A stretch of 64,000 nucleotides of DNA from Hyalangium minutum (GTDB lineage Bacteria > Myxococcota > Myxococcia > Myxococcales > Myxococcaceae). The notes under the pieces are model-generated. The model worked only from the letters and a program-made list of their open reading frames with translations. It was not told the origin of the DNA and ran no database searches. Position numbers and translations under genes: made by a program. Location: positions 186,001-250,000 of the forward strand of contig NZ_JMCB01000009.1 of the NCBI RefSeq assembly GCF_000737315.1, read 5' to 3'. Positions 4,301 through 22,225 of this stretch are shown piece after piece (position 1 is the first letter of the stretch; the number at the start of each line of letters is the position of its first letter).

Positions 4301-4354
4301 CTCCTCTCCATCGAGGACATAACAAACAAACAACAATTCGATAAAAACAGGTAA
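1322..4354 (+). CDS. CheB methylesterase / CheR methyltransferase / coiled-coil / PAS fusion
   Basis: CheB motifs GASAGG, VQHL, LSGTGTDG. CheR motifs VTAFFRDP, WVPGCSTGEE, ISCRNVLIY. NEELQSTNEEL coiled coil and two PAS-like domains. Exact start uncertain. Confidence 0.9.
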   Translation: MMGASQRQEGRRVKKRSAPRPSAASAQRSRTEAMLYPERFPLVGIGASAGGLPAFLSLLKHLPTQTGMAFVIVQHLAPARESILAGLLAKATAMPVLEATDGLDLEPNHVYVSPPGVGITFAQGALRLKARRAPGQRRHLIDNFLTSLAQASPGRAIGVILSGTGTDGTQGLQAIHAAGGTTLVQEPASADFDGMPWSAIAAGCVDHVLPPEGIAEVLAQLANVTAPSPGSSASATASPLLMPQEELGQIFQLLRSTARVDFTHYKPTTIHRRLERRMSLCRVGQLGDYVRYLREHPEELELLHQDLLIHVTAFFRDPATFEVLQQKIFPQLFENRPQELPFRIWVPGCSTGEEAYSLVISLLEFLGPAAAPPPVQVFATDLSEAAIEQARTAIYPASIASSVSPERLHRFFVQTDGGYRITKAVRSLCIFAQQNLVSDPPFSQVDLISCRNVLIYLGPVLQKKVMPILHYALRPGGFLVLGSSETVGSSADLFSLVDKRCKIYRKKNVSPRPGVLFSYRDAHAEKPIPSRRKHEPTTMTEELQREANRLVLARYGPPGVIVNGELEILHFRGHTGPYLELIPGAASLNLLKLVREGLALDLRSALHEAKKSARRVRKEGLVLPAEGTLRKVNLEVHPLSSVTAGREPYFLVLFEEVQEVASTQPQEDRASARRGRSSAAQSELERLREELLTTQEHLKTVLAQQEATHEELRTATEETQSSNEELQSTNEELETAKEELQSTNEELTTVNEELENSNLELSQLNSDLNNLIGSTHIATVMVDNERRIRRFTPMAAAVLRLSATDIGRPIRDVQGSLSLPDLEAALTEVIERLTLVEQEVCDRDGHWYSLRLRPYKTLDNRIDGAVVTLLDIDRLKRSLDDVRKTREYAKAIVETMREPFLVLDAALHVLNANPAFYSTFHIKQEQTLGRPLYALGNGQWNIPRLRQLLEEILPLNTHLQDFVMEHEFYTIGKRRMLLNARRISSDELGSPYILLSIEDITNKQQFDKNR

Positions 4355-4418
4355 ATCAGACTAGCCTGGAGAAGGGGCGCGTGACTAAGCTCCCCTCTCT
4401 GTGTGTGTGGGGGGGGTA

Positions 4419-6125
4419 ATGGGTAACCAGCGGAGCATGTCGCGCGCGGAAGTGGAGCAGGCTGTGCACTCGCTCGAGTGCAATCCCACCGCGCCGGATG
4501 AGCTGAAGCACCTGCTGCGGGAGCTGCAGCGCCACCAGCTGGAACTCGAACTGCAGAACCGCGAACTCCAGGAGGCGCACCAAGCGCTGGAGGAGTCGCG
4601 CAACCGCTACATGGAGCTCTACGACTTCGCGCCCATGGCCTGCGTGAGCCTGAATGAGCGCGCGTGCATCCAGGATCTCAACCTGACGGGCGCGGCCCTG
4701 CTGCGCCAGGATCGCACCTTTCTCCAAGGCCTGCCCTTCACCCCTTTCGTGGATCCCCAGGACGTGAGCCGCTTCCTGCTGCACGTGCGCCAGTGCATCG
4801 CGGGCGAGACGTTGAGCACGGAGCTGCGGCTGCGCGTCGCCAGGAGCCAGTTCGAGGTCCGGCTCTACAGCGCCCCGCTCCAGGACGGGAGGCCGCACGA
4901 GCGCATGTGCCGCACGGCCATCATCGACATCACCGAGCTGCGGCAGGTGCAGCTGCGCCTGAGCCTCGCCGAGCGCCTGGCCACAGTGGGCACGATCGCG
5001 GCGGGCATTGCCCACGAGATCAACAACCCCCTGGCCTTCCTCATGGGGAACCTCACGCTCGCCACGCTCACGTTGCAGTCCCAGGCCCCCGAGGCTGAGG
5101 TGTCACGGCCGCCAGGCGCCCTGGAGGGACGTCCCCCCGCGGAGCGGGCCCTCAAGGCGTTGGCTGAGGCCCAGACGGGCGCCGAGCGCATCCGGGACAT
5201 CGTGAAGGATCTGGGCGCCTTCGCCCGCCCCACCGCCTCGAGGAAGGGGCGCGTTGACGTTCAGCAGGTGCTGGAGCTGTCGGTGAAGATGGCCATGGCC
5301 GAGATCCGCCACCGCGCCACGCTCGTGCGGGACTACGCCAAGGCTCCGGAGATCACCGCCGATTCCGCCCAGCTGGGGCAGGTCTTCCTCAACCTGTTGG
5401 TGAACGCGGCGCAAGCCATCCCGGAAGGCGCGGCTTCCCTTCACGAGATCCGCCTGCGCGTGCGCACCGAGGAGGACACGGTCCTTGTGCAGGTCGAGGA
5501 CACGGGCGAAGGCATCTCCGCCCAAATCCTCGATCGCGTCTTCGACACCTTCTTCACCACCAAGGCGCCGAGCCATAGCATGGGGCTCGGGCTCGCCATC
5601 AGCCACAGCCTGGTGTCGCAGATGGGAGGGACCCTCACTGTGGAGAGCAAGCTGGGCCGGGGAAGCACCTTCTCCGTCCGGTTCCCCGCTGCGGCGCCCC
5701 CACCGGCGCTCACGAGAGAACGAGCTTCTCACCCGGCGCCCCCATCCGCTCTCCAGGGGGGGCGGATCCTCATCGTGGATGACGAGCCGAAGTTCGGCGA
5801 GACCTTGCAAATGCTCCTGAGCCTCTCTCACGAGGCCGTCTACACCTCCAGTGCACGCGAGGCCTTGCTCTGGATCCAGGAGGGCCACCACTACGACGCC
5901 ATCCTCTGCGATCTCATGATGGCGGAGGTGACCGGCCGGCAGTTCTATGAAGAGCTCTGCCAGCTTGCGCCGGAGATGGCCCGCCGCGTCATCTTCATGA
6001 CGGGTGGAGCCTATACCCCCGCCTCCCAGGAATTCGTCTCCGGGATGACACGCCCTTTGCTCATCAAGCCGTTCAAGGCCGATGCGCTCGATCAGGCGCT
6101 GCGGCCCCTCCTGCCGTCGGTTTAG
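4419..6125 (+). CDS. PAS hybrid histidine kinase with C-terminal receiver
   Basis: H-box GIAHEINNPL, N-box QVFLNLLVNA, G1/F/G2 boxes DTGEG, FFTTK, GLGL; receiver RILIVDDE...KPF. ATG at 4419 preferred over GTG at 4401. Confidence 0.9.
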   Translation: MGNQRSMSRAEVEQAVHSLECNPTAPDELKHLLRELQRHQLELELQNRELQEAHQALEESRNRYMELYDFAPMACVSLNERACIQDLNLTGAALLRQDRTFLQGLPFTPFVDPQDVSRFLLHVRQCIAGETLSTELRLRVARSQFEVRLYSAPLQDGRPHERMCRTAIIDITELRQVQLRLSLAERLATVGTIAAGIAHEINNPLAFLMGNLTLATLTLQSQAPEAEVSRPPGALEGRPPAERALKALAEAQTGAERIRDIVKDLGAFARPTASRKGRVDVQQVLELSVKMAMAEIRHRATLVRDYAKAPEITADSAQLGQVFLNLLVNAAQAIPEGAASLHEIRLRVRTEEDTVLVQVEDTGEGISAQILDRVFDTFFTTKAPSHSMGLGLAISHSLVSQMGGTLTVESKLGRGSTFSVRFPAAAPPPALTRERASHPAPPSALQGGRILIVDDEPKFGETLQMLLSLSHEAVYTSSAREALLWIQEGHHYDAILCDLMMAEVTGRQFYEELCQLAPEMARRVIFMTGGAYTPASQEFVSGMTRPLLIKPFKADALDQALRPLLPSV

Positions 6126-9294: not shown

Positions 9295-10635
9295 TCACAG
9301 ACGGCCGTGGGGAACCCGTCCCTGCTTCAGCGCCTCCACCTGCATGAAGGTGAAGGGTTGATCGTAGAGCACCCGGTCCTGCTGCCGCGTCCGGAAGAGA
9401 TCGACGATGAGGTTCATCCGATCCCCCAGGTCGCCCCAGTCCCTCGCCGCGCTCCCCGCCGTATCGTTCGGTGTTCGGTCCAGCGTCGCCATCAGCGAGA
9501 CGAGCTCCGGGTGCCCCAAGCGCGCGAGCGTGGGCGGGAAGTCCCGCTCGGCGTTCAGCGCCGGGATGTCCTCCCCGAGCCGCAGCGTCACATCCGGCAG
9601 CTCCAGCCGCATCAGCGATCGCGTCATCAGCTCCCGCCACAGCCGCTCCAGCTTGCCGGCGAGCGGACTGAAGGCGGCCTTCAGCGACATCTCGTGAAAC
9701 GGGCTCCCCTTGCGCGCCGACGTCACCCCCATCAGCTCCACCACCTGATCGAGGACCACCTGCCGCAGCGGCGCATGCAGCGCGCCCAGGATCGGCCCCT
9801 GGAGCCGGGTCTGCTCGTGGTAGCCCACCAGCGCGTTGGCCAGGAAGATGCGCTCGGCCCGCGCCTTGGTGTCCTGCTCGAACATGGCCTCGTAGGAGTG
9901 GGTAAAGGCCCGGATCAGCAGATCCTGTCCCTCACGAGACACTGGCCCCCGCGAGAGCCTGCCCAGGAACCGATCCAGCGTCGCCTGCTCGTACTGCTCG
10001 CTGTCCGAGAAGTGCTCGATCATGGCCACGAACAGTGGCGCGAGCTCCTCGAAGACCAGGAGATTGCCCCGAGCGACGTGCCGGGCCACCTCGTCCGCGA
10101 TCTGCTGGATGGCCCGCGTGAGCACCGTCTGGATGCCGAAGGGCGCCGCCCACGAGCCCAGCAACTCCGCCTGCAGCCCTCCCACGCTCCGCGTGAGCGA
10201 GTCCGCGCGGTCCAGCATCTCCCGGCTCAGAGAGGGCACCACCTCCTTGCGGATGAAGAACCCGGCCGTCTTCGAGGCCCACGTGGCGTGCGCGCACCAG
10301 GAGACGTTTTCCTCCCCGAGCAAGTCCGTCAGGGCGGTTGTCAGGACATGGTACGTGTGTGTGATGTGGAGGTTGCGCAGGACCGGGTCGGTCATGCGAA
10401 GAATCGCCTCGATCTCCGACGCCGTGGGGACCGGCCAGAAACGAGGCAGCGTGCCCCTCACCACCACGAGCCGCTCCGCCGCCAGCGAAGGAGCCGAGAC
10501 CCGGGTCCCCGTCCTCGGTCGCGCGGTGCGGCCCGAGCGCCCCCTCTGCGCACGCCCCGATCGGGGTGTGCCCGAGGGCCTCCCAGGGCTCTGCCGTGAC
10601 GATCGCCGGGGTCCCATTGCCCGCTCCTTGCCCAT
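9295..10635 (-). CDS. Hypothetical protein (possibly DUF2515-like)
   Basis: Strong GC3 bias and conserved-looking motifs NLHITHTYH, WCAHATWASKTAG, HEQTRLQ. The R/P-rich N-terminus may be an over-extension. Confidence 0.6.
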   Translation of the reverse strand: MGKERAMGPRRSSRQSPGRPSGTPRSGRAQRGRSGRTARPRTGTRVSAPSLAAERLVVVRGTLPRFWPVPTASEIEAILRMTDPVLRNLHITHTYHVLTTALTDLLGEENVSWCAHATWASKTAGFFIRKEVVPSLSREMLDRADSLTRSVGGLQAELLGSWAAPFGIQTVLTRAIQQIADEVARHVARGNLLVFEELAPLFVAMIEHFSDSEQYEQATLDRFLGRLSRGPVSREGQDLLIRAFTHSYEAMFEQDTKARAERIFLANALVGYHEQTRLQGPILGALHAPLRQVVLDQVVELMGVTSARKGSPFHEMSLKAAFSPLAGKLERLWRELMTRSLMRLELPDVTLRLGEDIPALNAERDFPPTLARLGHPELVSLMATLDRTPNDTAGSAARDWGDLGDRMNLIVDLFRTRQQDRVLYDQPFTFMQVEALKQGRVPHGRL

Positions 10636-10683
10636 GGGAGGCAGCGACCCGTGAGGCGAGCGCCTGCCTGATCCCCTGCTGGA

Positions 10684-12486
10684 TCAGACGATGCGGAACA
10701 CCCGCCCTGTGGGCACGAAGGGCAGGTGCCGCCCCTGCGGCAGCAGGAAGGCGTGCTCGCGCCGGAGCTGAAGCCGGTCGCACTCTCCATCCGTGATGAT
10801 GAGGATGGGCCCCTGTTTCGGGAAGTCCTCGGCTCGCTCCAAGAGATCGATCCCTGGCTGGAGGACCGTGCCACCTCGGCCGCGCACCCGCACCCGCTCG
10901 GCGATGGCCTCGGGTGCGACATAGCCTTCGTCGTACGCCACTGCGTCACAGAAGACGAGCCGCACCCGGGACACGTCCCGCGCCAAGCTGTAGCTCGCGA
11001 TGGCCCCGAGCGCCTTGGCCAGCAGCTTGCGGTCCATGGAGCCTGACGTGTCCAGCACCACCCCGAAGGTTCTCCCCTCCTGGGATTCCTCCCGAGGCAC
11101 CCACAGCGGCCGAGGAATGTCAGGGGTGGCCGACTGGCGCCGGCTGAGCCGTGTGTACGTCCGCCGCTTCTCCAGCGGGGAGAAGTGCGCGTCGAACCAC
11201 TGCGCCAACTCCACGTCCCATGGAATGGGCGGCTGATCCAGTGCGCGGATCTCCTCCACCAGGCCCGCAGGCAGGAAGCCCCGGCCCTCGGACTGGTGGT
11301 ACGCGAGTCCCTGCGACAAGCAGCGCCGGTAGAAGGCATCGAGCGTCATGCCATCGCCGTGCAGCCACCACTCGGGAGTGGTCCCGTCCAGCATGTCCCC
11401 GAGCCCGTAGCCGCGCAGCGTGGCCAGCTTCCGGTAGCGGCGCACGTCCGTGACAATCCGATCGTAGATGGCCTCCGCAGACAGCCCCTTGAGCTCGGGA
11501 TCGTAGAGGACGCCGAAGCTCGGCAGCTCGCCGACGCCCATCTCCACCAGCCAGCCGTTCACCACGTAGTCGCAGGCGACGTTCCACAGATAGGGATCCC
11601 GCCCCTGGCGGCGTGACTGGTGACGCAGGCCCACGTGAAGCAGTTCGTGCGCGATGACGAAGCGAGCGCTGCCCTCGTACAGCCCGGCCGAGGGGTTCAC
11701 GTAGATCTCCCGCGCCTCCTCGTCCACCGCCGCCACGGTGATCTGCATCCGCTGACAGACCAGCGGATCCTCCACCAGAGTGAAGTGCGCCGCGAGCGAG
11801 CCGAGCAGGGGGAACCGGGAGATGAACCACGAGCGCGCCCGCGAGGCCTCCGTGTGCACGCGCTCGCGCGGACTCATGGACTGCCGCAGCCCCGCAGCCA
11901 GCTCCACCGCCGAGTCCACCGCCTGCACGAGCCCCTGGGCCAGCAGCTTCTCCCAGTCCTGCTCCTGGCGGGTACTGGCCATTCCCACATCGACCATGTC
12001 GTAAGAGTTCGGGCCCGCCGCCCCGCAGCCCGCCAGCTTGGGAGGAATGCCGTCGCGAACGAAGCTCTCGTACAACCGCTCCTCGCTCTTGGAGCCGAAG
12101 TCCAGCTCCACCAGCATGTCCTCCGGCGGACGTCCAAACTTCAGATCCTTCAGGAAGCGCGCCACGAAGCAGTCGCACGCCGTCTGCCAAGCCACGGGCT
12201 CGGGGACGAGCTTGAAGTGGCCCAGTCCCAGGTGCAGCAGGCAGTGGGCGATGACGTAGGCCCACTCCTCCACCGAGCCGCGCCGCTTGGGATGCGCGTA
12301 GAGGACTCCGCCCGGGCCCACCACCATCCACCCGTTGGGCGGATACGGCGTGCTCTCGCGCCGGTACACAGCCGCACGCCACATCAGCGGGCCGAAGATG
12401 GGGTGGGCGCGCACCGTGCCGACGGCCTGCTCGAAGGCCTCAGTGGCGGGATCTCCTCCGCGCTTCTTGTCCTCCTTACGCGCCAT
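10684..12486 (-). CDS. DUF2201-type metallopeptidase + vWA protein with duplicated peptidase module
   Basis: AHCLLH and AHELLH motifs, each followed by an ACD motif; MIDAS VLDTSGSM, GGT and ITDG; overlaps the upstream ATPase by 11 bp. Confidence 0.85.
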   Translation of the reverse strand: MARKEDKKRGGDPATEAFEQAVGTVRAHPIFGPLMWRAAVYRRESTPYPPNGWMVVGPGGVLYAHPKRRGSVEEWAYVIAHCLLHLGLGHFKLVPEPVAWQTACDCFVARFLKDLKFGRPPEDMLVELDFGSKSEERLYESFVRDGIPPKLAGCGAAGPNSYDMVDVGMASTRQEQDWEKLLAQGLVQAVDSAVELAAGLRQSMSPRERVHTEASRARSWFISRFPLLGSLAAHFTLVEDPLVCQRMQITVAAVDEEAREIYVNPSAGLYEGSARFVIAHELLHVGLRHQSRRQGRDPYLWNVACDYVVNGWLVEMGVGELPSFGVLYDPELKGLSAEAIYDRIVTDVRRYRKLATLRGYGLGDMLDGTTPEWWLHGDGMTLDAFYRRCLSQGLAYHQSEGRGFLPAGLVEEIRALDQPPIPWDVELAQWFDAHFSPLEKRRTYTRLSRRQSATPDIPRPLWVPREESQEGRTFGVVLDTSGSMDRKLLAKALGAIASYSLARDVSRVRLVFCDAVAYDEGYVAPEAIAERVRVRGRGGTVLQPGIDLLERAEDFPKQGPILIITDGECDRLQLRREHAFLLPQGRHLPFVPTGRVFRIV

Positions 12487-13537
12487 CCTTGCGCTCCACC
12501 AGCCGAGGCAGATCGCGCACGATCTCCAGCAGCAGCCAATCCGGCAGCCCCTCGCCGTCCTGCCGTGCCACCACCATCTGCGCCATCTCGAAGCTGATGG
12601 CCGCCAGGTTCTTGATCAGCGCCTTGGCCCGGTGCGCCAGCTCGCGGTGGTGCTCAGCGAGCGCCTCGCGCGTACGCGGCAGCTCCTTGATGAGCTGGGC
12701 CCGCAGCGACTGCGAGAGGAAGTAGAGGACATCCCGATCCTCGGGCGCGTGGGGCCAGCCCATCTCGCCCCGGAGGATGGCGTTGAGCCGATACTTGCTG
12801 CGCGCCTGCTTCACGAACGCCTTGAACTGCCCCGCGTGCACGGGCGAGAGGCACCCGTAAGCCAGCACCTCCAGCGTGGCGTCCGGCACGTCCCCGCCAT
12901 ACTCCTTGAGGGCGTCGCTGAGCATGTGCCACGAGCGCGGCGTGGAGAACGGCTCCTCGTGCTTGGGAGGATTGCTCCAGAGGTGGTCTGGCCGCAGGCG
13001 GATGTAGTCGAGCACCATCGGGTGGAGTTCGGCCTGATGCGCCCACTCCAGCCAGTCTTGGTGCGAGGCCTGGAGCTGCACGTGGATCATCCGGTTGATG
13101 AGCGCCGAGGACATGGGCTTGACGATCGCGCTGTCCTGCGCCCGGTTGCCCGCGCCGATGACGATGGAGCCCGGGGGCAGCTCGTACTCGCCGATGCGCC
13201 GCTCGTGGATGAGGCTGTAGAAGGCCTTCTGCACCTCGTGCGAGCAGGCGTTCAGCTCGTCCAGGAAGAGGCAGTAGGGCTCACTGCGGGCAATCATCGT
13301 GGGCGGGCAGAAGCGGCTCTTGCCGTCGACGATCTGCGGCACACCGATGAGGTCCTCGGGCGCGAGCTGGCTGCCCAGCAACGACACGCACGGCAGCCCC
13401 ACCTGCTTGGCGAACTGCTGGACGATGGAGGACTTGCCGATGCCCGGTGGCCCCCAGATGAACACCGGCCGGATGACTGCGACGTGGAGGAGATACTCGG
13501 CCAGCGACTTCTGGGTCAGCGTCTGGACAGCGTTCAC
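12476..13537 (-). CDS. MoxR/dynein-related AAA+ ATPase
   Basis: Walker A GPPGIGKS, Walker B LFLDE, AGNRAQD, SALINR; GTG start with AGGAG RBS. Confidence 0.9.
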   Translation of the reverse strand: MNAVQTLTQKSLAEYLLHVAVIRPVFIWGPPGIGKSSIVQQFAKQVGLPCVSLLGSQLAPEDLIGVPQIVDGKSRFCPPTMIARSEPYCLFLDELNACSHEVQKAFYSLIHERRIGEYELPPGSIVIGAGNRAQDSAIVKPMSSALINRMIHVQLQASHQDWLEWAHQAELHPMVLDYIRLRPDHLWSNPPKHEEPFSTPRSWHMLSDALKEYGGDVPDATLEVLAYGCLSPVHAGQFKAFVKQARSKYRLNAILRGEMGWPHAPEDRDVLYFLSQSLRAQLIKELPRTREALAEHHRELAHRAKALIKNLAAISFEMAQMVVARQDGEGLPDWLLLEIVRDLPRLVERKDGA

Positions 13538-13612
13538 TCGGGAGTGCTCCTGGTGCCGTGGGCTCCGGAGGCCCCATGACGACAGGAGTGCGGACTTCTG
13601 ACAATCCCCGGG

Positions 13613-13711
13613 TCAGACCTTCAGGCCCGACCGGAATCGCCTCAGCACCGGCCCCAGCTCGCTCCCGGCGTTCACCTTCCACATCAGCAGCTCGGGAGGA
13701 GGCCGCGTCAT
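13613..13711 (-). CDS. Putative 32-aa ORF coupled to the RT stop (MTRPPPELLMWKVNAGSELGPVLRRFRSGLKV)
   Basis: ATGA overlap with the RT stop codon (13711-13708); mostly G/C-ending codons. Could be a remnant or spurious. Confidence 0.35.
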   Translation of the reverse strand: MTRPPPELLMWKVNAGSELGPVLRRFRSGLKV

Positions 13712-15123
13712 TCGCCCAGCAGCTCCTTCACCTCGCGCTGCCAGCGCTCGCCCAGCTCCGGGTGCACCATCTTCACGTACGCTGCGTAGCCTCGCAGCCA
13801 GCCCGAGAAGTCCTTGCGGCCCCGCGACTGGGACTCCACGCCGTGCTTGCGGCAGTTGTTCAGGATCGCCTTGAACCGGCGGCGCTCCTCGCGAGGAATG
13901 GACACCTGCTCGTTCACCGTCAGGCCCGTCACCCTCTGGCGCGAGTTCTTGCGCATCACCCGCCGCTTCGGCGCGTTCTCCAGGAAGCCCTCCTGCTGGA
14001 GGATGGCGTTCACCCACCACAGGAAGCGCCCCAGCTTCTCGGGCGGCTTCTCGAAGGAGAAGGACAGGTCATCCGCGTAGCGCGTGTAAGTGGCACCCGC
14101 CTTCTTCGCCAACGCCGTGAGCCGAGCGTCCATGCGCCGGCACACCAGGTTTGCGATCGCCGGAGACGTGGGCGCTCCCTGCGGCAGTGCTCCCGGCCAC
14201 ACCACTGTCCCATCCGGCAGCTTCGGCCGGTGCGTGGAGAGCCCCGCCAGCGTGCGGGCCACCTCGTCACCGTAGCCGTGCGCCTGGAACAGACCCTTCA
14301 CGCGCCGGTAGTGCACCGTGGGGAAGAAGTCCTCCAGATCCACGCGCACCACCACCGTGGCGCCCGTGTGCGGCTCGGCGTTGCTCACCGTGGAGCGCCC
14401 CTTCACGAAGCCGTGCGCGGCGTCGTGCGTGGGCATCTGCTCCAGGATCTTCTCGAGGATGGCGCGCTGCACCTCCTTGAGCTTCGCCCGAGGCGCCGAG
14501 ATGCGGCGCACCCCGCCCGAGCGCTTGGGCACCTCGAACTCCACGTACCCCGAGCCCGCCTCCGTGCCCGGCCGCATCAGCGCGGCGAGCTCCTCCTCTT
14601 GCACGCCCACCAGCTCCGCCACATCCTTCCGGGTGGACAGCTTGGGCAGCTTGCCCTTCAAGGGAGGCTGCTTCTTGGGGCGCCCTCCCCAGCGCATGGG
14701 GAGACCGAAGTTCCAGCCCGTGGGGTTCCAGCCGCCGCGGGACTGGGGCGTCGGGTGGCGCGGCGGCTTGAAGCGACGGTCCGGCGGCGCCACATCCGCC
14801 AGCCCCAGCTTGTGCACCGCGGCCCGCGCCGCTCCCGCCACCTGCTTGTCAGGGTCCTTCACCAACCGGCGCAGCTGCGCCGAGGCCGTTGCCCGCGCGA
14901 AGAGCAGCGGGATCTGCTGCGTGCCCTGGTGCCGCTCGCGCGGGTCCACGCTGCGCAGCATGCGCCCCACCGGCGCCAGCCACTGGCGGCTCACGTAGAA
15001 GCGCGCCACCTCGTACTCGGCCAGATTCTGGTGCTGCTCCAGCAGCGCGGTGATGCGCTTGAAGTTCGCTTCAGGGTCCGCCATCAGGGGCTTCAGCTCG
15101 AGGAGGAGGCCCACCAGGTCCAT
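13708..15123 (-). CDS. Retron-type reverse transcriptase with N-terminal HEAT-like helical extension
   Basis: Region X NAEPH, DLEDFFP, LPQGAPTSP, YADD, region Y VTG (RVTGLTV). Start placed at ATG 15123 (alternative 15129) downstream of GGAG. The longer ORF from 15504 runs through the ncRNA. Confidence 0.92.
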   Translation of the reverse strand: MDLVGLLLELKPLMADPEANFKRITALLEQHQNLAEYEVARFYVSRQWLAPVGRMLRSVDPRERHQGTQQIPLLFARATASAQLRRLVKDPDKQVAGAARAAVHKLGLADVAPPDRRFKPPRHPTPQSRGGWNPTGWNFGLPMRWGGRPKKQPPLKGKLPKLSTRKDVAELVGVQEEELAALMRPGTEAGSGYVEFEVPKRSGGVRRISAPRAKLKEVQRAILEKILEQMPTHDAAHGFVKGRSTVSNAEPHTGATVVVRVDLEDFFPTVHYRRVKGLFQAHGYGDEVARTLAGLSTHRPKLPDGTVVWPGALPQGAPTSPAIANLVCRRMDARLTALAKKAGATYTRYADDLSFSFEKPPEKLGRFLWWVNAILQQEGFLENAPKRRVMRKNSRQRVTGLTVNEQVSIPREERRRFKAILNNCRKHGVESQSRGRKDFSGWLRGYAAYVKMVHPELGERWQREVKELLGE

Positions 15124-15167
15124 TCCCATGCTCTCCCGGGGCTGCGGCCCCGCGCGTCGAAACCACT

Positions 15168-15326
15168 GCGCTCCTGGGGCCGCCGCCACCTGCACGGCAG
15201 ATGCACGAGTGGTCAGGGAAGCCCGCAAGGCGGACCACGCGCTGCGTCGTTCTTCAATGGGTATCGCTGGCAGCCGCGACGTGACATCGCGGACGGAAGG
15301 CTGGCTGCACGCGACCCCAGGAGCAC
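15168..15326 (-). ncRNA. Retron msr-msd non-coding RNA
   Basis: Transcript 5' arm GUGCUCCUGGGGUCGC (15326-15311) pairs with 3' arm GCGGCCCCAGGAGCGC (15183-15168): 16 bp including 2 G-U pairs. First unpaired base is G15310. Internal hairpins CCGCGAUG-UCA-CGUCGCGG, GUGGUC...GACCAC and CAUCUGC-CGU-GCAGGUG. Lies 45 nt upstream of the RT start. Confidence 0.8.
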
Positions 15327-15364
15327 TGTTGACTCCAGCACATTCGATTCCCAGAGGGAAGCAT

Positions 15365-18241
15365 TCACCGGGTCGGGGGAGGCTCGCCCTCCTCATCGAG
15401 GAGTGCCAGGAAGGTGTCTCGCGTCCCCCCGGGTGCCTGGCGGATGAGGGCGTTGAACTGCTGGGCCCGCGCGCGGACCCGCGCTCCGTGGGCCTGCATG
15501 GCACCGAGAGCCTCGGGGACCATGGTGGGCCGGGCGAGCACCTCCAGGTTCTGCGCCAGCTCGCGGTGGCTGCGGGGTGCGGAGAGGCAGGCGCTCACGC
15601 CGGGCTGCGAGAGGCTGTAGCGGTAGCAGTCCACCGCCGTGGGGAGCACGGCGTCCGCGGGCACCCCGGGCGCGGGCTGGAGCAACCGGCCATAGCAGGT
15701 GGCCGTGAAGGTGAGGACTCCAGTTCCCCGCGCGAGCGCCTCGGGGAAGAAGGAGGACTCCGCGCCTCGGTATGCGGCGCTGTGGCGCGTCATCACCACG
15801 GGCCAGGGGCGGCTCCGGATCGCTTCCGTGGCCACGTCTCGCAGGTGGGTGGAGAAGCCGAAGGCGCGGAGCTTGCCCTCGGCGCGGAGCTTCTCCAGGG
15901 CCTCGAAGTCCTCGTCATTGAGGCGCTCAGGCGAGCGCACCCAGAAGAGGAGAAAGACGTCCAGCCAGCTCGTGCGCAGCTGGCGCAGCGCGGACTCCAC
16001 GTCCCGGCGGAGCGCCGCAGGGCCCGAGTGGTACGAGCCCGCGACCAGCACGAGTCCCTCCCGCTGGCTCCGGAGAGAGCGCAGGAAACGGGTGAGCTGG
16101 AGGTACTCTGTCTCCCAGAAGAAGGTGTTCACACCGGCCTCATGGGCCTCGGCCAGCGAGGCGGCGGACAGGCCGTTGGCGCCCGAGAGCACCAGCGGGG
16201 AGACGCGCAGCCCCGTGTTCCCGAGGAGGCGCAAGGAGGGCCGAGAGGGGCTCTCGGGAGGCGTGCGCTTCGTGGGGGTCTTGTCCCGGCGAGGCCGTGT
16301 GGGCCGGCGCTGCTCCAGGTCAGGGGCTGAGGAGAAGACCTCGTCCGGGAAGATGAGGGTCATCGCCTCGAGGTGGGCGACCACCCGCTGTGGCTCCGAG
16401 GTGTCTCGTAGCGCGGCGGCCAGGTGCTGGAAGGCGGTGGAGTCCGCACGGCGCAACAGCCAAGTGTAGGCGGAGGCGCGAAGATCGGGCTCCCGCGTAC
16501 GCATGGGGCCTCGCAGCAGGCCGGCCAAGAGCGCGTCGAGTGTCTCGCACGCCTCGAGCACGGCTGCGGCAGCGGCTCGAACCATCGGAGAGGAATCGAG
16601 CGACAGGCGAAGGAGCGCCTCCAGTTCTTCCCGTGCGCCCTCTGCGTGAAGCAACTCTGCGCCACGGGCGCGCATCCACGGATCGGGGGAGCGCGCGCTG
16701 GCAAGGCCCACGCTGCGCAGTTCATTCGGTGAGAGGCTCACGCGGTGGGAGGCCAGGAGCGCGAGTGCCGATCGCCGTACCGAGAGGTCCGGATCGGACT
16801 CACATGCCTCTCGCGCCGAGGTCACGTCCAGCACAGCCGTGCGGATCCAGGGGTCCTCGTGCGAGAGGGCGTCGCGGCGTTCCTCCTCCGTGAGGGTTCC
16901 CTGCTCCGAACGCTCCCCGAGGGCCACTGCACGAACCGACACATCGGCATCGGTCGAGAGGCGCGCGAGCAAGGCCTCGTCGCCGACGCACCCGGCGGCC
17001 CCCGCAACGGCGCGGCGCTCGTGCGGAGTACAGGCCTGGGGAGCGAAGGCCACGAGGGCCCGCGCGAAGGCCAGAATGGCCGAGGGCGCAGGAGGCCGCT
17101 GCTCCCAGGCAGCGATGACCTCGTCACGCACGGACGCGTCCGGGTCACTGAGCGCAGCGAGCACCACTTCGCGGCTTGCGGGATCGTGTACGAGACCGGA
17201 GAGAGCTGCGCGCCGGACGGCGGGCTCCGCATGCCGGGCCAGGGCTTGGACCTGCTGGATGAGCTCGGGGTGATCCCTGCGCACCGCGATGCGGGCGGCC
17301 CAAGCGACCGCGCCCGGCCTTGGAGGTTCACCGAGGATACGCGAGGCCAGGGCGAGTTCATCCAGGTCGATCCGCTGAAGCAGAGAGCGAACCTCATCGG
17401 CGGAGTGAGGAACGCGCGGCTCATCCAGCCAGCGCATCACGAGCCTGACAGCCTCGGGATCCCGGAGTTCGATCAGACGCCGCCGCGCGAGGGAACGGAG
17501 CGGCTCGTGCGGATCTCCCAACCACTCCACCAGCTTGATGAGCGGCACCTCTGAGGCAGAGAGCCGCTCAAGCCGGGCTGTGACCACGGCGGGATCCTGG
17601 TCGTCCAGTCCCGCCTCGGCAGGTACCGGGAGAGGCCCCGCGAAGCTGCCCTCCTGAGGTGACGGAGCGGAAGAAGTCCAAGCGCCTTCGAGATACGCGG
17701 CGGCCGCCCGGACTGAACCGGGCCCTGCTGCATCACCTACGGCGCGCACACGTTGGCGGACCTCCGCGTGGGTCTCTCCCAGCCAGAGCAGCGCCTGCAC
17801 GGCCGCGCTTCGCACCCGCCAGAAGGGATCCTCTAAAGTTTGGATGAGCAATTCGAGCGCGCCGGTGCCTGCGACGGAGGCAGCAGCTCTGACGGCGGCC
17901 CGCCGCACCCACCAGACCGGCTCCTCACGGACGGCCTGTTCCGCCTGAGGAAGCAGTTCCCGCGTCCCCATTCGGGCCAGGGCGCGCCACACGCGATCGC
18001 GAACCATGGGAAGAGGGTCGCGCAGCGCCTCAATGAGCGCGCGGGCAAAGAGGCGATCCCGCGCCTCGCCGAGCCGCCGTGCGGCGGAGGCCCGGACCTC
18101 GGCGTCCTCATCCCCCAACAGGGCCTGCCTGAGCGCGTAGCGGCCCGTGAGCGTCGTGGCATCCACGGCGTCCACAGCCTCGCGGCGCACCTCAGCGGAC
18201 TCATCGAACAGCCGCACTGCGGCCGGGTTCAAAGGCGTCAT
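15365..18241 (-). CDS. HEAT/ARM-repeat protein fused to a C-terminal aldo-keto reductase-like domain
   Basis: Many L.DP...VR..AA.AL repeats over the first ~660 aa; AKR-like N-terminal motif LGNTGLRVSPLVL at ~16.24 kb, plus SALRQLRTSWLDVF and KLRAFGFSTH. Confidence 0.85.
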   Translation of the reverse strand: MTPLNPAAVRLFDESAEVRREAVDAVDATTLTGRYALRQALLGDEDAEVRASAARRLGEARDRLFARALIEALRDPLPMVRDRVWRALARMGTRELLPQAEQAVREEPVWWVRRAAVRAAASVAGTGALELLIQTLEDPFWRVRSAAVQALLWLGETHAEVRQRVRAVGDAAGPGSVRAAAAYLEGAWTSSAPSPQEGSFAGPLPVPAEAGLDDQDPAVVTARLERLSASEVPLIKLVEWLGDPHEPLRSLARRRLIELRDPEAVRLVMRWLDEPRVPHSADEVRSLLQRIDLDELALASRILGEPPRPGAVAWAARIAVRRDHPELIQQVQALARHAEPAVRRAALSGLVHDPASREVVLAALSDPDASVRDEVIAAWEQRPPAPSAILAFARALVAFAPQACTPHERRAVAGAAGCVGDEALLARLSTDADVSVRAVALGERSEQGTLTEEERRDALSHEDPWIRTAVLDVTSAREACESDPDLSVRRSALALLASHRVSLSPNELRSVGLASARSPDPWMRARGAELLHAEGAREELEALLRLSLDSSPMVRAAAAAVLEACETLDALLAGLLRGPMRTREPDLRASAYTWLLRRADSTAFQHLAAALRDTSEPQRVVAHLEAMTLIFPDEVFSSAPDLEQRRPTRPRRDKTPTKRTPPESPSRPSLRLLGNTGLRVSPLVLSGANGLSAASLAEAHEAGVNTFFWETEYLQLTRFLRSLRSQREGLVLVAGSYHSGPAALRRDVESALRQLRTSWLDVFLLFWVRSPERLNDEDFEALEKLRAEGKLRAFGFSTHLRDVATEAIRSRPWPVVMTRHSAAYRGAESSFFPEALARGTGVLTFTATCYGRLLQPAPGVPADAVLPTAVDCYRYSLSQPGVSACLSAPRSHRELAQNLEVLARPTMVPEALGAMQAHGARVRARAQQFNALIRQAPGGTRDTFLALLDEEGEPPPTR

Positions 18242-18260
18242 GCCCCTCAGACTCTACGCG

Positions 18261-18292
18261 CCTTGGTAGAATCGCGCCCATGCCTGACATGC
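18261..18292 (+). repeat. Direct repeat copy 1 (extended -10 TGgTAGAAT + ATGCCTGACATGC)
   Basis: CCTTGGTAGAATCGCGCCCATGCCTGACATGC; 31/32 identical to 20470-20501. Confidence 0.9.
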
Positions 18293-19641
18293 GGGCGTTG
18301 CAGGGGAAGATGCGCTGGGTGCTCTCGCACCGGTTGGGGCCTCTGGCGCTGGCCCTGCTGGTGGGATGCAGCAGTTCCACGCGGATCCTGCGCCTGGAGG
18401 CGGAGCAGCCCGAGCCCATCGTCCACATTGCTCCCGGAGACCGAGCGCCCGTGCGAGTGGACAGCGCGGCCTTCCTGGAAGCCTTCTCCACGCATGCCTT
18501 GCAGGTGCAGCCTGCCCCACAACCGCTCCAGCAAGCGCAGCGCTTGTGGCTGCTCCCCTCTCGAAGCGCTCCCTACGCCACTGCGCGCAGCCGCCTGGGC
18601 CTCGTCTCCGTGAATACTCAAGAGGACATGCCTCGGGGTCACCTGCTTCCAGAGACCTCTGCAGCGGAGGGCTCCATTTCGCGTGATTATGGCCTGTGGT
18701 GCGAGAGCCGCTCCCTGCCTCTGGACTGCCTTCAGCTACTGGACGGGGGAGCACTGCTGAGCCATGACGGCAAACGCGCCCTGGCCCTGCACTTCGCCCT
18801 GACCTCCCTCTGGCTGGAGACGAAAGACGCGCTGGAGCAGATGGTGGACCCGTTGGCGATTCAGACCACCCTCGTCTCCGCCATGACGATGTACCTCATG
18901 CTCTGGGTTCTTCCCGAGCCTCTCTCCAAGGGCATCGCTGCGGCCATGACCGTGGCCCTTATTGGCTACCTGGGCTTCGACACTGTCTGGAGCCTGTTCC
19001 AAGGGTGGGCCCTGCTGGTCGAGGACGTGGACAAGGCCACCTCCTTCGACCAGGTACGGGATGCCGGACGCCGGTTCAGCAGAGTGCTGGGGCCCAACGC
19101 CGCCCGTGTCTTCGCCATGCTCTTCACTGTCGCCGCAGGCAACACGGCGGCCGGCTTTGCCTCCAAGCTGCCCTCCCTACCCGGCGCGCCTCAGGCAACC
19201 CTGGCAGTTGCAATCCCTGGAGGTACCCCTCTCTCCCTCGCGGCCGCGGTGGACTCCGTCACCGTCTCCGCCTCAGGCGCCACCCTCGTCCTGGCACCTG
19301 GCGCCGTGGCCATGGCCAGCTCGGGCGACACGACCGTCTACATCTCGAGAAACGGAGGACAACTCCAATACGTAGGCATCACGAACGACCTTGCACGGCG
19401 CGCAGCGGAGCAACTCCGCGAGAAGGGAATCCACATTGAAGACCTGATGAATAATCTCTCAAGAGAGGATGCTCGTGCCGTCGAACAAGTCCTCATCGAG
19501 ATCCATGGTCTTCAGAAGAATGGCGGTACTCTTCTGAACCGCATCAACAGCATTGCTCGCTCAAACCCCAAGTACGCCCGCGCGCTGCGTCGAGGCAAAG
19601 AACTCCTCAAGACCCTCAAGAATGGGGACCAATTGGAATGA
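18280..19641 (+). CDS. SitA5-like polymorphic toxin lipoprotein with GIY-YIG/URI-type nuclease tip
   Basis: Lipobox LLVGC; conserved myxobacterial body (YGLWCE, DCLQLL, PEPLSKG, GFDTVW, APGAVAM); AT-richer tip VYIS...YVGITNDLARR...EQVLI. True start may be ATG 18310. Confidence 0.75.
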   Translation: MPDMRALQGKMRWVLSHRLGPLALALLVGCSSSTRILRLEAEQPEPIVHIAPGDRAPVRVDSAAFLEAFSTHALQVQPAPQPLQQAQRLWLLPSRSAPYATARSRLGLVSVNTQEDMPRGHLLPETSAAEGSISRDYGLWCESRSLPLDCLQLLDGGALLSHDGKRALALHFALTSLWLETKDALEQMVDPLAIQTTLVSAMTMYLMLWVLPEPLSKGIAAAMTVALIGYLGFDTVWSLFQGWALLVEDVDKATSFDQVRDAGRRFSRVLGPNAARVFAMLFTVAAGNTAAGFASKLPSLPGAPQATLAVAIPGGTPLSLAAAVDSVTVSASGATLVLAPGAVAMASSGDTTVYISRNGGQLQYVGITNDLARRAAEQLREKGIHIEDLMNNLSREDARAVEQVLIEIHGLQKNGGTLLNRINSIARSNPKYARALRRGKELLKTLKNGDQLE

Positions 19642-20456
19642 CCGGCTCGCGCAAAAAAGCGAAGTTCGGAGACATCGCCGAAGTTCGCACGCCTCGAGGG
19701 CTCGCCTATGTGCAGTACACCTCCAAGCATCCGAGATACAGCGATACCATCCGTGTGCTTCCTGGGCTTTTCAAGATACGCCCTTCTAACGACGAACTCG
19801 CTGCGCTCGCAACCCAAGAAGGGTACTTCGTCTTCTATCTTGTGAGCCTCGCCGTCAAACATGGGCTTGTGGAGATCATCGGTCATTACCCGATCCCCGT
19901 AGGGCTCGATGCTCCAGCCAAGCTGCTGAGAGTCGGCTTCATCGCGCCCGGGGGAAAAGTCATGACCTGGGTTCTTCTCGAAGGCGCTAAGGAGACTCTC
20001 ATCAAGAGAGAGCTCTCTCCCGAGGAGAAACGCCTCTCTCGCGCTTCTATGTGGAACCACGAGTATCTGGTGCAGCGCCTGGCAGAGCAGTGGCGGCCTG
20101 AACATGAGCATGAGCCACGCCCGCCCGCTCCCGTGACCAGCACGCCGCCGGAACCTTCGGGACAAGCGGAAGCGCCCCCCACCGCGTCCTCCGCCACCAC
20201 TCCGCTGCGCATGAGCCACTACCTCTACTTCCCTCTCACCAAGGACGGTAAAGCCGTCGCTGCAGAACTGCGTCGCCGTGGCTTCGAAATCGAGAGCCGC
20301 AAAGGCGCCGATGGTGTGAACTGGCTCGTCCTCGTCCACCACACCCTCTCCTCCTCCGAGGATGAGGCCGCGCTCACCGTCCGCGACGAACTGGAGCGCC
20401 TCGCCCAGCAACACTCCGGCGAGTATGACGGCTCGGAGACCGCGCTCCCGGAGTGA
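19638..20456 (+). CDS. Cognate immunity protein (Imm26-like N-terminus + RraB-like C-terminal domain)
   Basis: ATGA overlap with the toxin stop; N-terminal GDIAEV...YVQY pattern; Pro-rich linker; C-terminal HYLYFP...GEYDGSET. Confidence 0.6.
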   Translation: MTGSRKKAKFGDIAEVRTPRGLAYVQYTSKHPRYSDTIRVLPGLFKIRPSNDELAALATQEGYFVFYLVSLAVKHGLVEIIGHYPIPVGLDAPAKLLRVGFIAPGGKVMTWVLLEGAKETLIKRELSPEEKRLSRASMWNHEYLVQRLAEQWRPEHEHEPRPPAPVTSTPPEPSGQAEAPPTASSATTPLRMSHYLYFPLTKDGKAVAAELRRRGFEIESRKGADGVNWLVLVHHTLSSSEDEAALTVRDELERLAQQHSGEYDGSETALPE

Positions 20457-20469
20457 ATGTGGCAGCGCC

Positions 20470-20501
20470 CCTTGGTAGAATCCCGCCCATGCCTGACATG
20501 C
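20470..20501 (+). repeat. Direct repeat copy 2
   Basis: CCTTGGTAGAATCCCGCCCATGCCTGACATGC; one mismatch versus 18261-18292. Confidence 0.9.
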
Positions 20502-21142
20502 TGGCCATCATCAGCAAGGCGGTCTTCGAGAAGGAGGCTGCCGGCCTCAAGCCTGGGGACGTCCTTCCCCTCGACCGGTACCGCAGCGCGAGCCGCCACC
20601 TCGATCCCTTGAAGTCCGGCGGCCGCCTCTTCCTCGTCACCGTGCGCCCTCCGAAGGAGGCGCTCTGGTGGGTGGCCGTCCTCGAAGGCCTCAAGTTCCA
20701 GGACGAAGAGTGGCGCGCTACGCCCAACCGCATCCCCATCACCGACATCACCCGCCTCATCCCAAAGCTCCGCTTCGAGTCCGGCAAAGGCATCACCGCC
20801 GCCAAGGGCGCCCTGGGCATGTCTCTCCAGACGCCCCGCGTCCTCGCCGCTGAGGACCTCGCGCTGCTCCTGCCCTCCGGCAACAACGGCCCCGCCGAGG
20901 CCCCCGCCCCCGCAGGCCCCATCAACCTCACCGCCCACGAGCCGGACTCGCCCCTGCCTTGCCTGTGCAAGCGCTGCCTGCCCAAGGCCCCCGAGCGGGC
21001 CCAAGCCAAGGGTATGGCGTTCACCCGCGCCCACGTCGAAGCCGCGGACCGCGTCCTCCACTACTGGCTCCCCGATGAGCTGCTGCACGACGCCGCCCGC
21101 GTCTCCCAATCCGTGCTCGGAGCCCTGCACGCCCGGCTCTAA
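20489..21142 (+). CDS. Hypothetical protein with C-terminal CxCxxC motif
   Basis: Strong GC3 bias; starts MPDMLAIISK inside repeat copy 2; PCLCKRC motif. Confidence 0.7.
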   Translation: MPDMLAIISKAVFEKEAAGLKPGDVLPLDRYRSASRHLDPLKSGGRLFLVTVRPPKEALWWVAVLEGLKFQDEEWRATPNRIPITDITRLIPKLRFESGKGITAAKGALGMSLQTPRVLAAEDLALLLPSGNNGPAEAPAPAGPINLTAHEPDSPLPCLCKRCLPKAPERAQAKGMAFTRAHVEAADRVLHYWLPDELLHDAARVSQSVLGALHARL

Positions 21143-21157
21143 CGCCCTCCCGCACGC

Positions 21158-22225
21158 TCACACCCGGTACTCCACGAAGGCCTCCCGGCACGCGGGCCCC
21201 GCAGCCACCCACATCGTCCTCCGCGCGGGCGCCATCACCACCGCCGCCTTCGTCGCCATGGGCATCGCCCCAGGCGCCACGGGCTCGTCATGGCGGCACA
21301 GCCGCCCACCCGGATTGCCGTGGTCGGCCAGGAACCCCATCAGCCGCTCCGGCGTCAACCGCCCGTAGTCCGCGTCGATGAGCTCGCGCAGCTTCTGTGC
21401 GCGGCCATGAGTGCACGGCACGAAGTGGTGCGTCACATCCAACGCCTGAAGCCGCTCCGCCTGGTAGTGATTCGCGTGCACGAGCACTCCCCGCTCGGGC
21501 TCCAACACCGCCCGGTCGTCATACGTGCTCTCCAGTCCCAGCACCCGCCCCGCGGCATCCCCCAGCAGATACGCCCCGAAGCCCCGCGCCACTCCCGCCA
21601 ACACCTCCATGGCCGCGCGCAGGCCCGGCTGCCGCATCGCCCGAGGCAAGTAGACCCCCAGCGGCACGAGCGACTGGCACGGCTGCGGCGCGACGATCGT
21701 CAGGTTGGAGCAATTGGCGAACCCCTCACTGCTCAGGTGGTAGTACGGCGCGCACCCCAGGCACAGCGACAGCAGCGAGCGCCCATCCGGATAGCGCACC
21801 CGGATCAGATCCACCGTGGCCTCCGGGTTCCAGTCCACGTTCTGGCCCACCAGCGTCTGCCCATCCGCCGTGGCCGGGCCCGTCACCGCGAACGAGGTGC
21901 ACATACCGCCGATCTGCTGGTAGTTGATGGCCACCTCGAGCATGCACTGGAGCGCGAAGGCCTCCTCGTATGGGATGGCTGCCCCTTCCGCCTGGCCTCG
22001 GATGAGCTCCAGCGCCTCCGGATCGAAGGCCCGAACGTTGGCCTCCAGCTTCATCGCCGTCCCTACCACCGCCGCCCGCGAGGCCTGGAAGGGCCCCTCG
22101 GCCAGCCCCCGGAAGAGCGCCTCTACCGAGGCCCGGAAGCTCCCCCGGCACCCCTCTCCCCACTGTTGGCCGATCTGCCGGGCGGTTCCCTGGCACTCCA
22201 CGATCTGCAGCTTGCGCGTCGTCAT
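21158..22225 (-). CDS. Peptidase C45 family (Ntn-hydrolase, acyl-CoA:6-APA acyltransferase-like)
   Basis: Autoprocessing site GGM-CTSF, GQNVDW, HANHY. Confidence 0.85.
   Translation of the reverse strand: MTTRKLQIVECQGTARQIGQQWGEGCRGSFRASVEALFRGLAEGPFQASRAAVVGTAMKLEANVRAFDPEALELIRGQAEGAAIPYEEAFALQCMLEVAINYQQIGGMCTSFAVTGPATADGQTLVGQNVDWNPEATVDLIRVRYPDGRSLLSLCLGCAPYYHLSSEGFANCSNLTIVAPQPCQSLVPLGVYLPRAMRQPGLRAAMEVLAGVARGFGAYLLGDAAGRVLGLESTYDDRAVLEPERGVLVHANHYQAERLQALDVTHHFVPCTHGRAQKLRELIDADYGRLTPERLMGFLADHGNPGGRLCRHDEPVAPGAMPMATKAAVVMAPARRTMWVAAGPACREAFVEYRV

Follow-up and report, generated by a model that had tools for sequence, protein, structure and literature searches.

A HEAT-repeat protein with a degenerate aldo-keto reductase barrel accompanies a type XIII-like retron across Myxococcota

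The window analyzed here, a 64,000-nucleotide stretch of the Hyalangium minutum genome (NCBI RefSeq assembly GCF_000737315.1, contig NZ_JMCB01000009.1, positions 186,001 to 250,000 of the forward strand), carries a gene for a HEAT-repeat scaffold fused to an aldo-keto reductase (AKR) fold, followed on the same strand by a retron-type non-coding RNA (ncRNA) and a retron reverse transcriptase (RT). The gene, referred to below as HEAT-AKR, occupies positions 15365..18241 (−) in a region of ~70% G+C, and this interval is exactly one open reading frame (ORF) of 958 aa plus stop (ATG at 18241, stop at 15365-15367). Its product matches the Pfam families HEAT_2, HEAT and Aldo_ket_red. The ncRNA (msr-msd; 15168..15343, −) begins 21 nt past the stop codon of HEAT-AKR, and the RT gene (13708..15129, −; 473 aa) begins 39 nt after a2, the second arm of the closing stem of the ncRNA. 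A model match to the ncRNA at this spacing bears out the initial annotation, made from the sequence alone, which had placed the gene directly upstream of a retron ncRNA.

The N-terminal two-thirds of the protein is a HEAT α-solenoid (residues 1-643; 16313..18241, −). Pfam assigns HEAT_2 over five stretches (E=1e-30) and HEAT (E=2.8e-16) in the 958-aa protein, and a full-length AlphaFold2 model built with 67 homologues as input (predicted local distance difference test score, pLDDT, 87.6; predicted template modeling score, pTM, 0.77) shows ~20 repeats, with ~40 helices spanning residues 6-643 and an internal disordered loop at residues 191-208. PDB sequence matches of this region are to αRep and PBS-HEAT proteins, with αRep proteins at the top, and a full-length fold search returned no HEAT-specific relative besides αRep. 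The solenoid is acidic (isoelectric point, pI, 5.5; net charge −15), and the motifs EPVWWVRR and DPFWRVR within it are invariant among homologues. It is joined by a Pro/Arg-rich disordered linker (approximately residues 644-669; 16235..16312, −), which has a pLDDT below 50 at residues 650-664, a pI of 11.6 and a variable sequence in the family alignment, to a basic (pI 9.2) C-terminal barrel.

This barrel (residues 670-958; 15368..16234, −) is an (α/β)8 barrel with two C-terminal helices, as assigned from AlphaFold2, Foldseek and residue alignments. When residues 660-958 were modeled alone, eight β/α units followed by two long helices were obtained with a pLDDT of 91.9. The Pfam match to Aldo_ket_red (PF00248) covers residues 741-809 only and scores 30.1 bits against a cut-off of 24; a family profile matched AKRs in the PDB at E=9e-15. 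The top Foldseek matches of the barrel in the PDB are AKRtyl, AKR11C1, AKR11A and L-galactose dehydrogenase (E ~5e-16, TM 0.62-0.70), PA4992 is also matched (TMt 0.76-0.78), and the best 50 PDB matches are all AKRs with the exception of SmbA. The product of this ORF is thus a HEAT scaffold fused to an AKR-fold barrel, as the initial annotation had it.

The fusion is a fixed architecture of the family. All 218 homologues found in the protein database belong to Myxococcota or to metagenome-assembled genomes labeled delta-proteobacteria, and every full-length one has both the HEAT and the AKR Pfam domains. An exhaustive HMMER search of 1.84 billion cluster representatives with the AKR domain gave 224 clusters with E≤1e-30. 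In the 150 best matches listed, the domain is C-terminal in proteins of ~900-1100 aa; shorter proteins probably represent fragments.

The ncRNA was identified with RNAalifold, a covariance model and covariation. It spans 176 nt and is more conserved between Cystobacterineae and Polyangium than the flanking coding sequence. RNAalifold closes it with a 14-bp stem (a1, 15312-15325; a2, 15169-15182) and places in its interior two invariant nested hairpins and a third hairpin that varies, with compensatory changes. A covariance model built on 13 sequences (R1) matches the window at 200.7 bits and also 70 related genome loci. In a 91-row alignment pairing holds in 93% of cells, and both sides change in 37 of 43 pairs, as compared to 15-23 in slid controls; this alignment was fitted to the model, which favors structure, and the slid controls are nonetheless far lower. 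All 14 pairs of the a1/a2 stem covary. An Rfam scan of positions 10000-22000 gave no match at E≤1, the msr family included. The Rfam msr family is built largely on enterobacterial retrons, and its miss is weak negative evidence. Comparison of the hairpin with the supplement of a retron census, which lists a type XIII retron of Enhygromyxa salina, gave no match, and against viral contigs the msr hairpin gave two hairpin-only chance matches. By its anatomy the locus is a retron, and it is predicted to yield msDNA (multicopy single-stranded DNA).

PADLOC assigns the RT (Pfam RVT_1) to RT_XIII with a score of 395 bits; the next model (RT_other) reaches 333. RT_XIII is likewise the best model for the window RT and six distant RTs of the family (365-395 bits, ~60 bits above the next model), so that membership of clade 10 is read by proxy, from the best PADLOC model. 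Among solved proteins, the window RT comes closest to the retron RTs Ec67, Ec86 and Ec78; no type XIII protein turned up among the solved structures searched with the RT. It is strongly basic (net charge +31) and carries a basic, family-specific N-terminal extension of ~158 aa that is conserved jointly with the HEAT-AKR gene; its N-terminal 176 aa matched only six fragments in a database of 5.8 billion proteins. Compared with an Mx162 RT sequence, the window RT has 42% identity in the core and none in the N-terminal extension, which, as a lead rather than a test, suggests that it may be paralogous to the Mx162 RT lineage.

The association of gene and retron was followed in a scan with a single genome for each GTDB species, which gave 99 relatives; 80 loci, each with flanks of 10 kb, were retained. 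These loci come from Hyalangium, Archangium, Myxococcus, Pyxidicoccus, Corallococcus, Polyangium, Nannocystaceae, Enhygromyxa, Kofleriaceae, Haliangiales and Labilithrix. Where at least 2.9 kb of downstream DNA was present (72 loci), the same RT, N-terminal extension included, follows in 69, on the strand of HEAT-AKR and, in 55 of these 69, within 1 kb of it. Of the 74 loci whose downstream DNA reached 0.5 kb or more, 70 contain the ncRNA, in each case past the gene and on its strand. Homologues of HEAT-AKR are thus regularly followed by a retron. The association also survives interruption: an insertion separates HEAT-AKR from the ncRNA in Archangium, and another separates the ncRNA from the RT in Polyangium and in locus L058, where the RT is 1.6-4.6 kb off and the ncRNA still adjoins HEAT-AKR. 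At L035 and L040, which have no RT within 10 kb, the ncRNA stays beside the HEAT-AKR gene. Identities to the window in the AKR domain and in the RT core co-vary with r=0.96 (n=67), as those of co-inherited partners should. Scans of homologues and genomes turned up no member of the family in M. xanthus or most Corallococcus species; HEAT-AKR is therefore an accessory and not a core gene. As it stands beside the same retron across myxobacteria, it is probably the protein partner of the retron and not a metabolic enzyme.

Two further genes belong to the cluster. From three gene-called loci, HEAT-AKR and the RT had appeared to be its sole conserved genes, a view overturned by clustering of ORFs around the loci, which revealed a 217-aa protein, here P225 (20489..21142, +, in the window; the listed ORF starts at 20453), and a protein of ~326 aa with TIGR02996 and leucine-rich repeats (LRR). 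P225 is present in 65 of 80 loci in four arrangements: divergent from and abutting HEAT-AKR (32 loci), upstream on the same strand (6 loci), split into a C-terminal CxCxxC domain upstream and an N-terminal domain right after the RT (17 loci), or as the C-terminal domain only (10 loci). In Archangium and Pyxidicoccus the locus tags of P225 and HEAT-AKR are adjacent. No match to P225 was found in Pfam, NCBIfam, PADLOC or the PDB, with the single sequence or a profile, and its database homologues are all named 'hypothetical protein'. The LRR gene follows the RT or the P225 N-terminal domain in 39 of 80 loci. It is present in the close relative L016 (9503-10480) and absent from the window, where ~170 nt (13538-13707) lie between the RT stop and the start of a MoxR gene. 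Among the annotated neighbors in M. stipitatus, Nannocystaceae ST9 and P. aurulentum, none is common besides P225 and the LRR gene. Retention of the same members through changes of order, strand and even domain fusion is what a functional module usually shows. The initial annotation had recognized the retron link, which stands and proves stronger than it had claimed, and had missed P225, the LRR protein and the multiple ncRNA copies described next.

Two tandem ncRNA copies lie between HEAT-AKR and a single RT at many related loci, namely L018, L020, L022, L023, L024, L038, L042, L049, L053, L057, L062, L066, L071, L075, L076 and L078; those of L022, for example, are at 13010-13185 and 13218-13408. 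The metagenome contig L097 has three copies. Tandem ncRNAs with one RT suggest that a single RT serves several templates.

The AKR catalytic tetrad Asp-Tyr-Lys-His reads Phe708-Tyr713-Gly735-Phe766 in alignments to solved AKRs and by strand position in the model (codons on the reverse strand at 16118-16120, 16103-16105, 16037-16039 and 15944-15946, respectively). Pairwise and profile alignments set the catalytic Lys opposite Gly735 (VSKVY and VAGSY) and the catalytic His opposite Phe766 (LLHW and LLFW). For the Asp, the family profile 'AGVnlF' pairs with 'AGVTTF' of MtmW, and the alignment ends where AKR 'DTAxxY' and family 'FWEPxY' begin. Continued without a gap (GVNTF|FWETEY against GVTTF|DTAxxY), it sets Asp against Phe708 and Tyr against Tyr713, with β2 ending at 706-708 in the model; a HMMER alternative with a five-residue gap likewise offers no Asp. 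Phe708, Trp709, Glu710 and Gly735 are invariant in 67 homologues, Phe766 is conserved in ~90%, and Tyr713 in ~84%, with His in some. Conserved to this degree, the replacements are fixed traits of the family and not those of a decaying copy. With three of four tetrad residues replaced and fixed, and only the Tyr kept, the barrel cannot be a canonical AKR enzyme. In this the loss of catalytic residues proposed by the initial annotation is confirmed. Source annotations of the homologues vary between 'aldo/keto reductase', 'predicted oxidoreductase' and 'HEAT repeat protein', and the reductase labels are probably misleading.

The initial annotation had gone further and suggested an NADP(H)-binding sensor. 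In that account the barrel would bind cofactor without turnover and report the redox state to the retron, in the manner of the Kvβ subunits (AKR6), in which an AKR barrel serves as a regulatory subunit. Kvβ subunits keep the tetrad and bind NADPH tightly, whereas the HEAT-AKR family keeps only the tetrad Tyr. Part of the cofactor site does survive: the adenosine-2'-phosphate motif 'IPK[ST]..R..EN' is partly kept as 'APR...EL..N', Ser797 of the 'SN' pair after β5 is retained, the nicotinamide-stacking aromatic after β7 is kept as Phe845, and 'GRLL' after β7 is common to the family and the AKR structure 4pmj. The pocket face is also conserved (see below). The nicotinamide side is a different matter. 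In AKRs, Asn after β5 and Gln after β6 hold the nicotinamide carboxamide; here 'SN' reads 'ST' (Asn to Thr798) and the Gln is Met817, nearly invariant in the family (≥90%), and a claim of NADP(H) binding is therefore not supported. The β1-loop 'G-T-W/M' has become the small residues 'S-G-A', the tetrad Asp, Lys and His are lost, and several polar contacts have given way to hydrophobic side chains that would occupy the nicotinamide position. NADP(H) binding in the usual mode appears doubtful from these replacements, and we regard a redox sensor as unlikely.

Whatever its ligand, the barrel pocket is evidently still under selection, as judged from sequence and the strand topology of the model by comparing conservation on the two barrel faces. 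The C-terminal ends of the β-strands (the catalytic face) have a mean identity of 0.82 and an entropy of 0.65 bits, as compared to 0.71 and 1.21 bits for the N-terminal face and an identity of 0.70 for the remainder of the barrel; the difference between the faces is significant (Mann-Whitney p=0.002). Invariant or nearly invariant residues of the catalytic face include S686, G687, F707-E710, G735, Y737, L764-W767, R769, S797, H799 and R801, and further R819, H820, A823, position 824, F845, Y850, R852 and A888-R890. Position 824 (15770-15772) is Tyr in the window protein and His in 97% of the family, where it forms part of the near-invariant motif RHSAAH.

Compared with its closest solved relatives (AKRtyl, 8jwk/8jwl; AKR11C1, 1ynp/1ynq; AKR11A, 1pyf; 4pmj; 6cia), the barrel shares the (α/β)8 fold, the N-terminal β-hairpin 'LG.TG..VS', the motifs 'LxRLxxDxxDv' and 'GKxRaxGxS' and part of the 2'-phosphate motif. 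Unlike them, it has the altered tetrad and nicotinamide site described above, lacks loop A, adds two long C-terminal helices and always stands behind ~640 residues of HEAT. A non-catalytic AKR-like barrel has a precedent in SmbA of Caulobacter crescentus (PDB 6gs8, 6gtm, 7b0e), a receptor of ppGpp and c-di-GMP, bound through R78, N111, Q114, R143 and E188, that signals to its partner via movements of a loop and the C-terminal helix (PMC9944927). SmbA is among the fold matches of the HEAT-AKR barrel (TMt 0.64-0.73) and did not turn up in PDB sequence searches; it is a functional analogy with similarity of fold only, since SmbA stands alone, without HEAT repeats and without a retron.

Among known retrons the locus is closest to type XIII (Mx162/Retron-Mxa1, Mx65, Sa163, Ne144), which combines a clade-10 RT, an ncRNA of distinctive form and a protein of SWIM/DEDE/winged-helix type (cluster 114_1), whose gene often stands behind one for a HEAT/ARM protein (clusters 216_1, 259_1, 1688_1 or 3262_1); the RT is reported to co-evolve with the HEAT/ARM protein and not with the SWIM protein, and the type to be inherited vertically (Mestre et al. 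2020, PMC7736814). The RT_XIII-type RT, the HEAT-repeat partner, the myxobacterial host and vertical inheritance are shared. However, Pfam and PADLOC identified no SWIM/DEDE/winged-helix protein among the window neighbors, nor was the SWIM family found within ±10 kb of the locus in M. stipitatus, Nannocystaceae ST9 or P. aurulentum. The HEAT protein here ends in a pseudo-AKR barrel and not a WGR-like domain, and it matches the PADLOC model HEAT-ARM_XIII at 33 bits only, over 136 residues. The N-terminal extension of the RT also differs, and P225 and the TIGR02996-LRR protein are extra partners. HEAT-AKR is best described as the partner in an apparently undescribed variant of type XIII retrons that lacks the SWIM protein. 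One of the clusters labeled only 'HEAT/ARM-repeat' by Mestre et al. (259_1, 1688_1, 3262_1 or 216_2) might be the same family, which limits the claim to novelty. Full-text literature searches returned no paper linking retrons to an aldo-keto reductase domain.

Taken together, we consider it fairly probable that HEAT-AKR is a dedicated subunit binding a ligand or nucleic acid, neither an RT nor a redox protein, of a retron of the type XIII RT clade that is inherited vertically throughout Myxococcota. The protein would share a transcription unit with the ncRNA and would join the RT-msDNA ribonucleoprotein, with the acidic HEAT solenoid (net −15) offering a docking platform for the basic RT (net +31), whose N-terminal extension has a weak likeness to HEAT repeats. 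The basic pseudo-AKR barrel would then act as a binding module and not as an oxidoreductase, and its pocket, rich in Arg, His and aromatic residues (E710, R769, H799, R801, R819, Y850 and R852 among the invariant ones), may hold a phosphate-bearing ligand such as part of the msDNA or RNA, or a nucleotide.

The same pocket could instead house a new catalytic center, for example one with hydrolase or transferase activity towards nucleotides or nucleic acids, and HEAT-AKR would then be the retron's toxic output. Invariant Glu, His and Arg residues gather at the C-termini of the β-strands (E710, H799, R801, R819, H820 and E828), and no other obvious enzyme is universal in the cluster. Retron partners are usually enzymes restrained by RT-msDNA (PMC7736814). 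On the other hand, no hydrolase or nuclease family is matched, the neighbors in sequence and fold are all AKRs or SmbA, and no metal-binding motif was recognized. Phylum-wide vertical inheritance, though compatible with a suicide toxin, fits one poorly, and the output might just as well be the uncharacterized P225 or LRR protein. We give such an effector a low probability.

Several observations weigh against a ligand-binding subunit of the retron. Contact of HEAT-AKR with the RT or msDNA is deduced solely from linkage, co-divergence and complementary charge, and the retron and the putative complex of this lineage are known here from sequence alone. A correlation such as that of r=0.96 would also arise if two unrelated neighbors were simply inherited vertically. 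Three loci (L004, L035 and L040) have the HEAT-AKR gene with no RT within 10 kb, and, conversely, 15 metagenome contigs carry the ncRNA with neither HEAT-AKR nor RT nearby; these are full-length R1 matches of 37-105 bits, so the RNA is not strictly tied to the HEAT-AKR protein. The likeness of the RT N-terminus to HEAT repeats amounts to one sub-threshold HEAT_2 match in one homologue (25 vs 27.7 bits), and the N-terminus of the window RT has no Pfam match.

The 15 orphan contigs are L085-L087, L089, L091-L095, L098, L101, L102, L105, L106 and L108, with ncRNA copies at, for example, L089:3636-3808(−) and L098:7507-7707(−). In two long ones the ncRNA lies amid housekeeping genes (aminotransferase/isocitrate lyase in one, amine oxidase/HflX in the other).

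A more elaborate version of the binding-subunit reading would make the pseudo-AKR barrel a reader of nucleic acid or nucleotides derived from a former cofactor site, its remaining adenosine-2'-phosphate half-site recognizing either a phosphorylated nucleotide signal or the 2'-5' branched guanosine that msDNA contains. HEAT-AKR would be the sensing subunit of a multi-protein retron machine of P225, RT and LRR protein, supplied with templates by tandem or dispersed ncRNAs, kept vertically phylum-wide and possibly having a cellular role beyond phage defense. This remains a speculative scheme to which we attach little confidence. As to the biological role, the phylum-wide vertical pattern leans towards a domesticated cellular function rather than abortive infection, while the defense-type insertions, the toxin cassette (see below) and patchy loss lean towards a defense island. 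That HEAT-AKR is an ordinary myxobacterial gene standing beside an ancient retron insertion since the phylum ancestor, with no functional link, seems very improbable: identity follows taxonomy, a downstream metallo-β-lactamase-like gene is also syntenic within Hyalangium, insertions of up to 9.5 kb between genes are tolerated and the three loci without a nearby RT fit, yet annotated neighbors in three distant genomes share nothing besides P225 and the LRR gene, P225 changes strand and position and even splits while staying in the cluster, the ncRNA so close behind the stop codon remains with HEAT-AKR when the RT is displaced, and the family is accessory.

It was in type XIII retrons that msDNA first came to light (Mx162, 1984). 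In the retron literature searched, no function or mechanism is given for this type. The HEAT-AKR lineage offers a compact version of this problem, with an RT of the same clade, a covarying ncRNA and a dead-site fold with a conserved pocket, and it is a further example of an enzyme fold that a retroelement system has taken on as a non-catalytic module. The apparent absence of the cluster from M. xanthus may provide a natural null host for reconstitution; combined with the recognizable fold and the conserved pocket, this makes the locus worth experimental follow-up.

Some neighboring genes have a narrower distribution. Between P225 and HEAT-AKR, the window carries an inserted sitA5/sitI cassette (18280-20456) that among related loci is common only to L016. 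It consists of a SitA5-family polymorphic toxin (18280-19641, +; NCBIfam SitA5_escort, 2.5e-86), whose C-terminal region looks GIY-YIG-like by eye, and an overlapping RraB-like ORF (19638-20456, +) that is likely the immunity gene. Directly after the RT are a MoxR-type AAA+ ATPase (12476-13537, −; AAA_5, weak bpMoxR) and a DUF2201 metallopeptidase/VWA protein (10684-12486, −), whose ORFs overlap. The pair was considered as core retron effectors and rejected, since it is confined to the Hyalangium clade (L002, L009, L014, L016 and L037) and its distance from the RT varies. The two genes are reminiscent of MoxR-vWA conflict systems.

The insertion between ncRNA and RT in Polyangium (inserted ORFs at L018:14503-15165, +, and at L023:14468-16345, +, and 16397-17473, +) encodes a YhgA-like (Transposase_31) protein. 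That of L023 also encodes an OLD-family ATPase-TOPRIM protein, which is of defense type and resembles type I-B retron effectors. Farther along in the window are, downstream of DUF2201, a 446-aa ORF (9295-10635, −) with no match in Pfam, NCBIfam or PADLOC, the C-terminal half of which is common to L016, and two genes of ordinary signaling unrelated to HEAT-AKR, a CheB-CheR fusion with PAS domains (1322-4354, +) and a hybrid histidine kinase (4401-6125, +).

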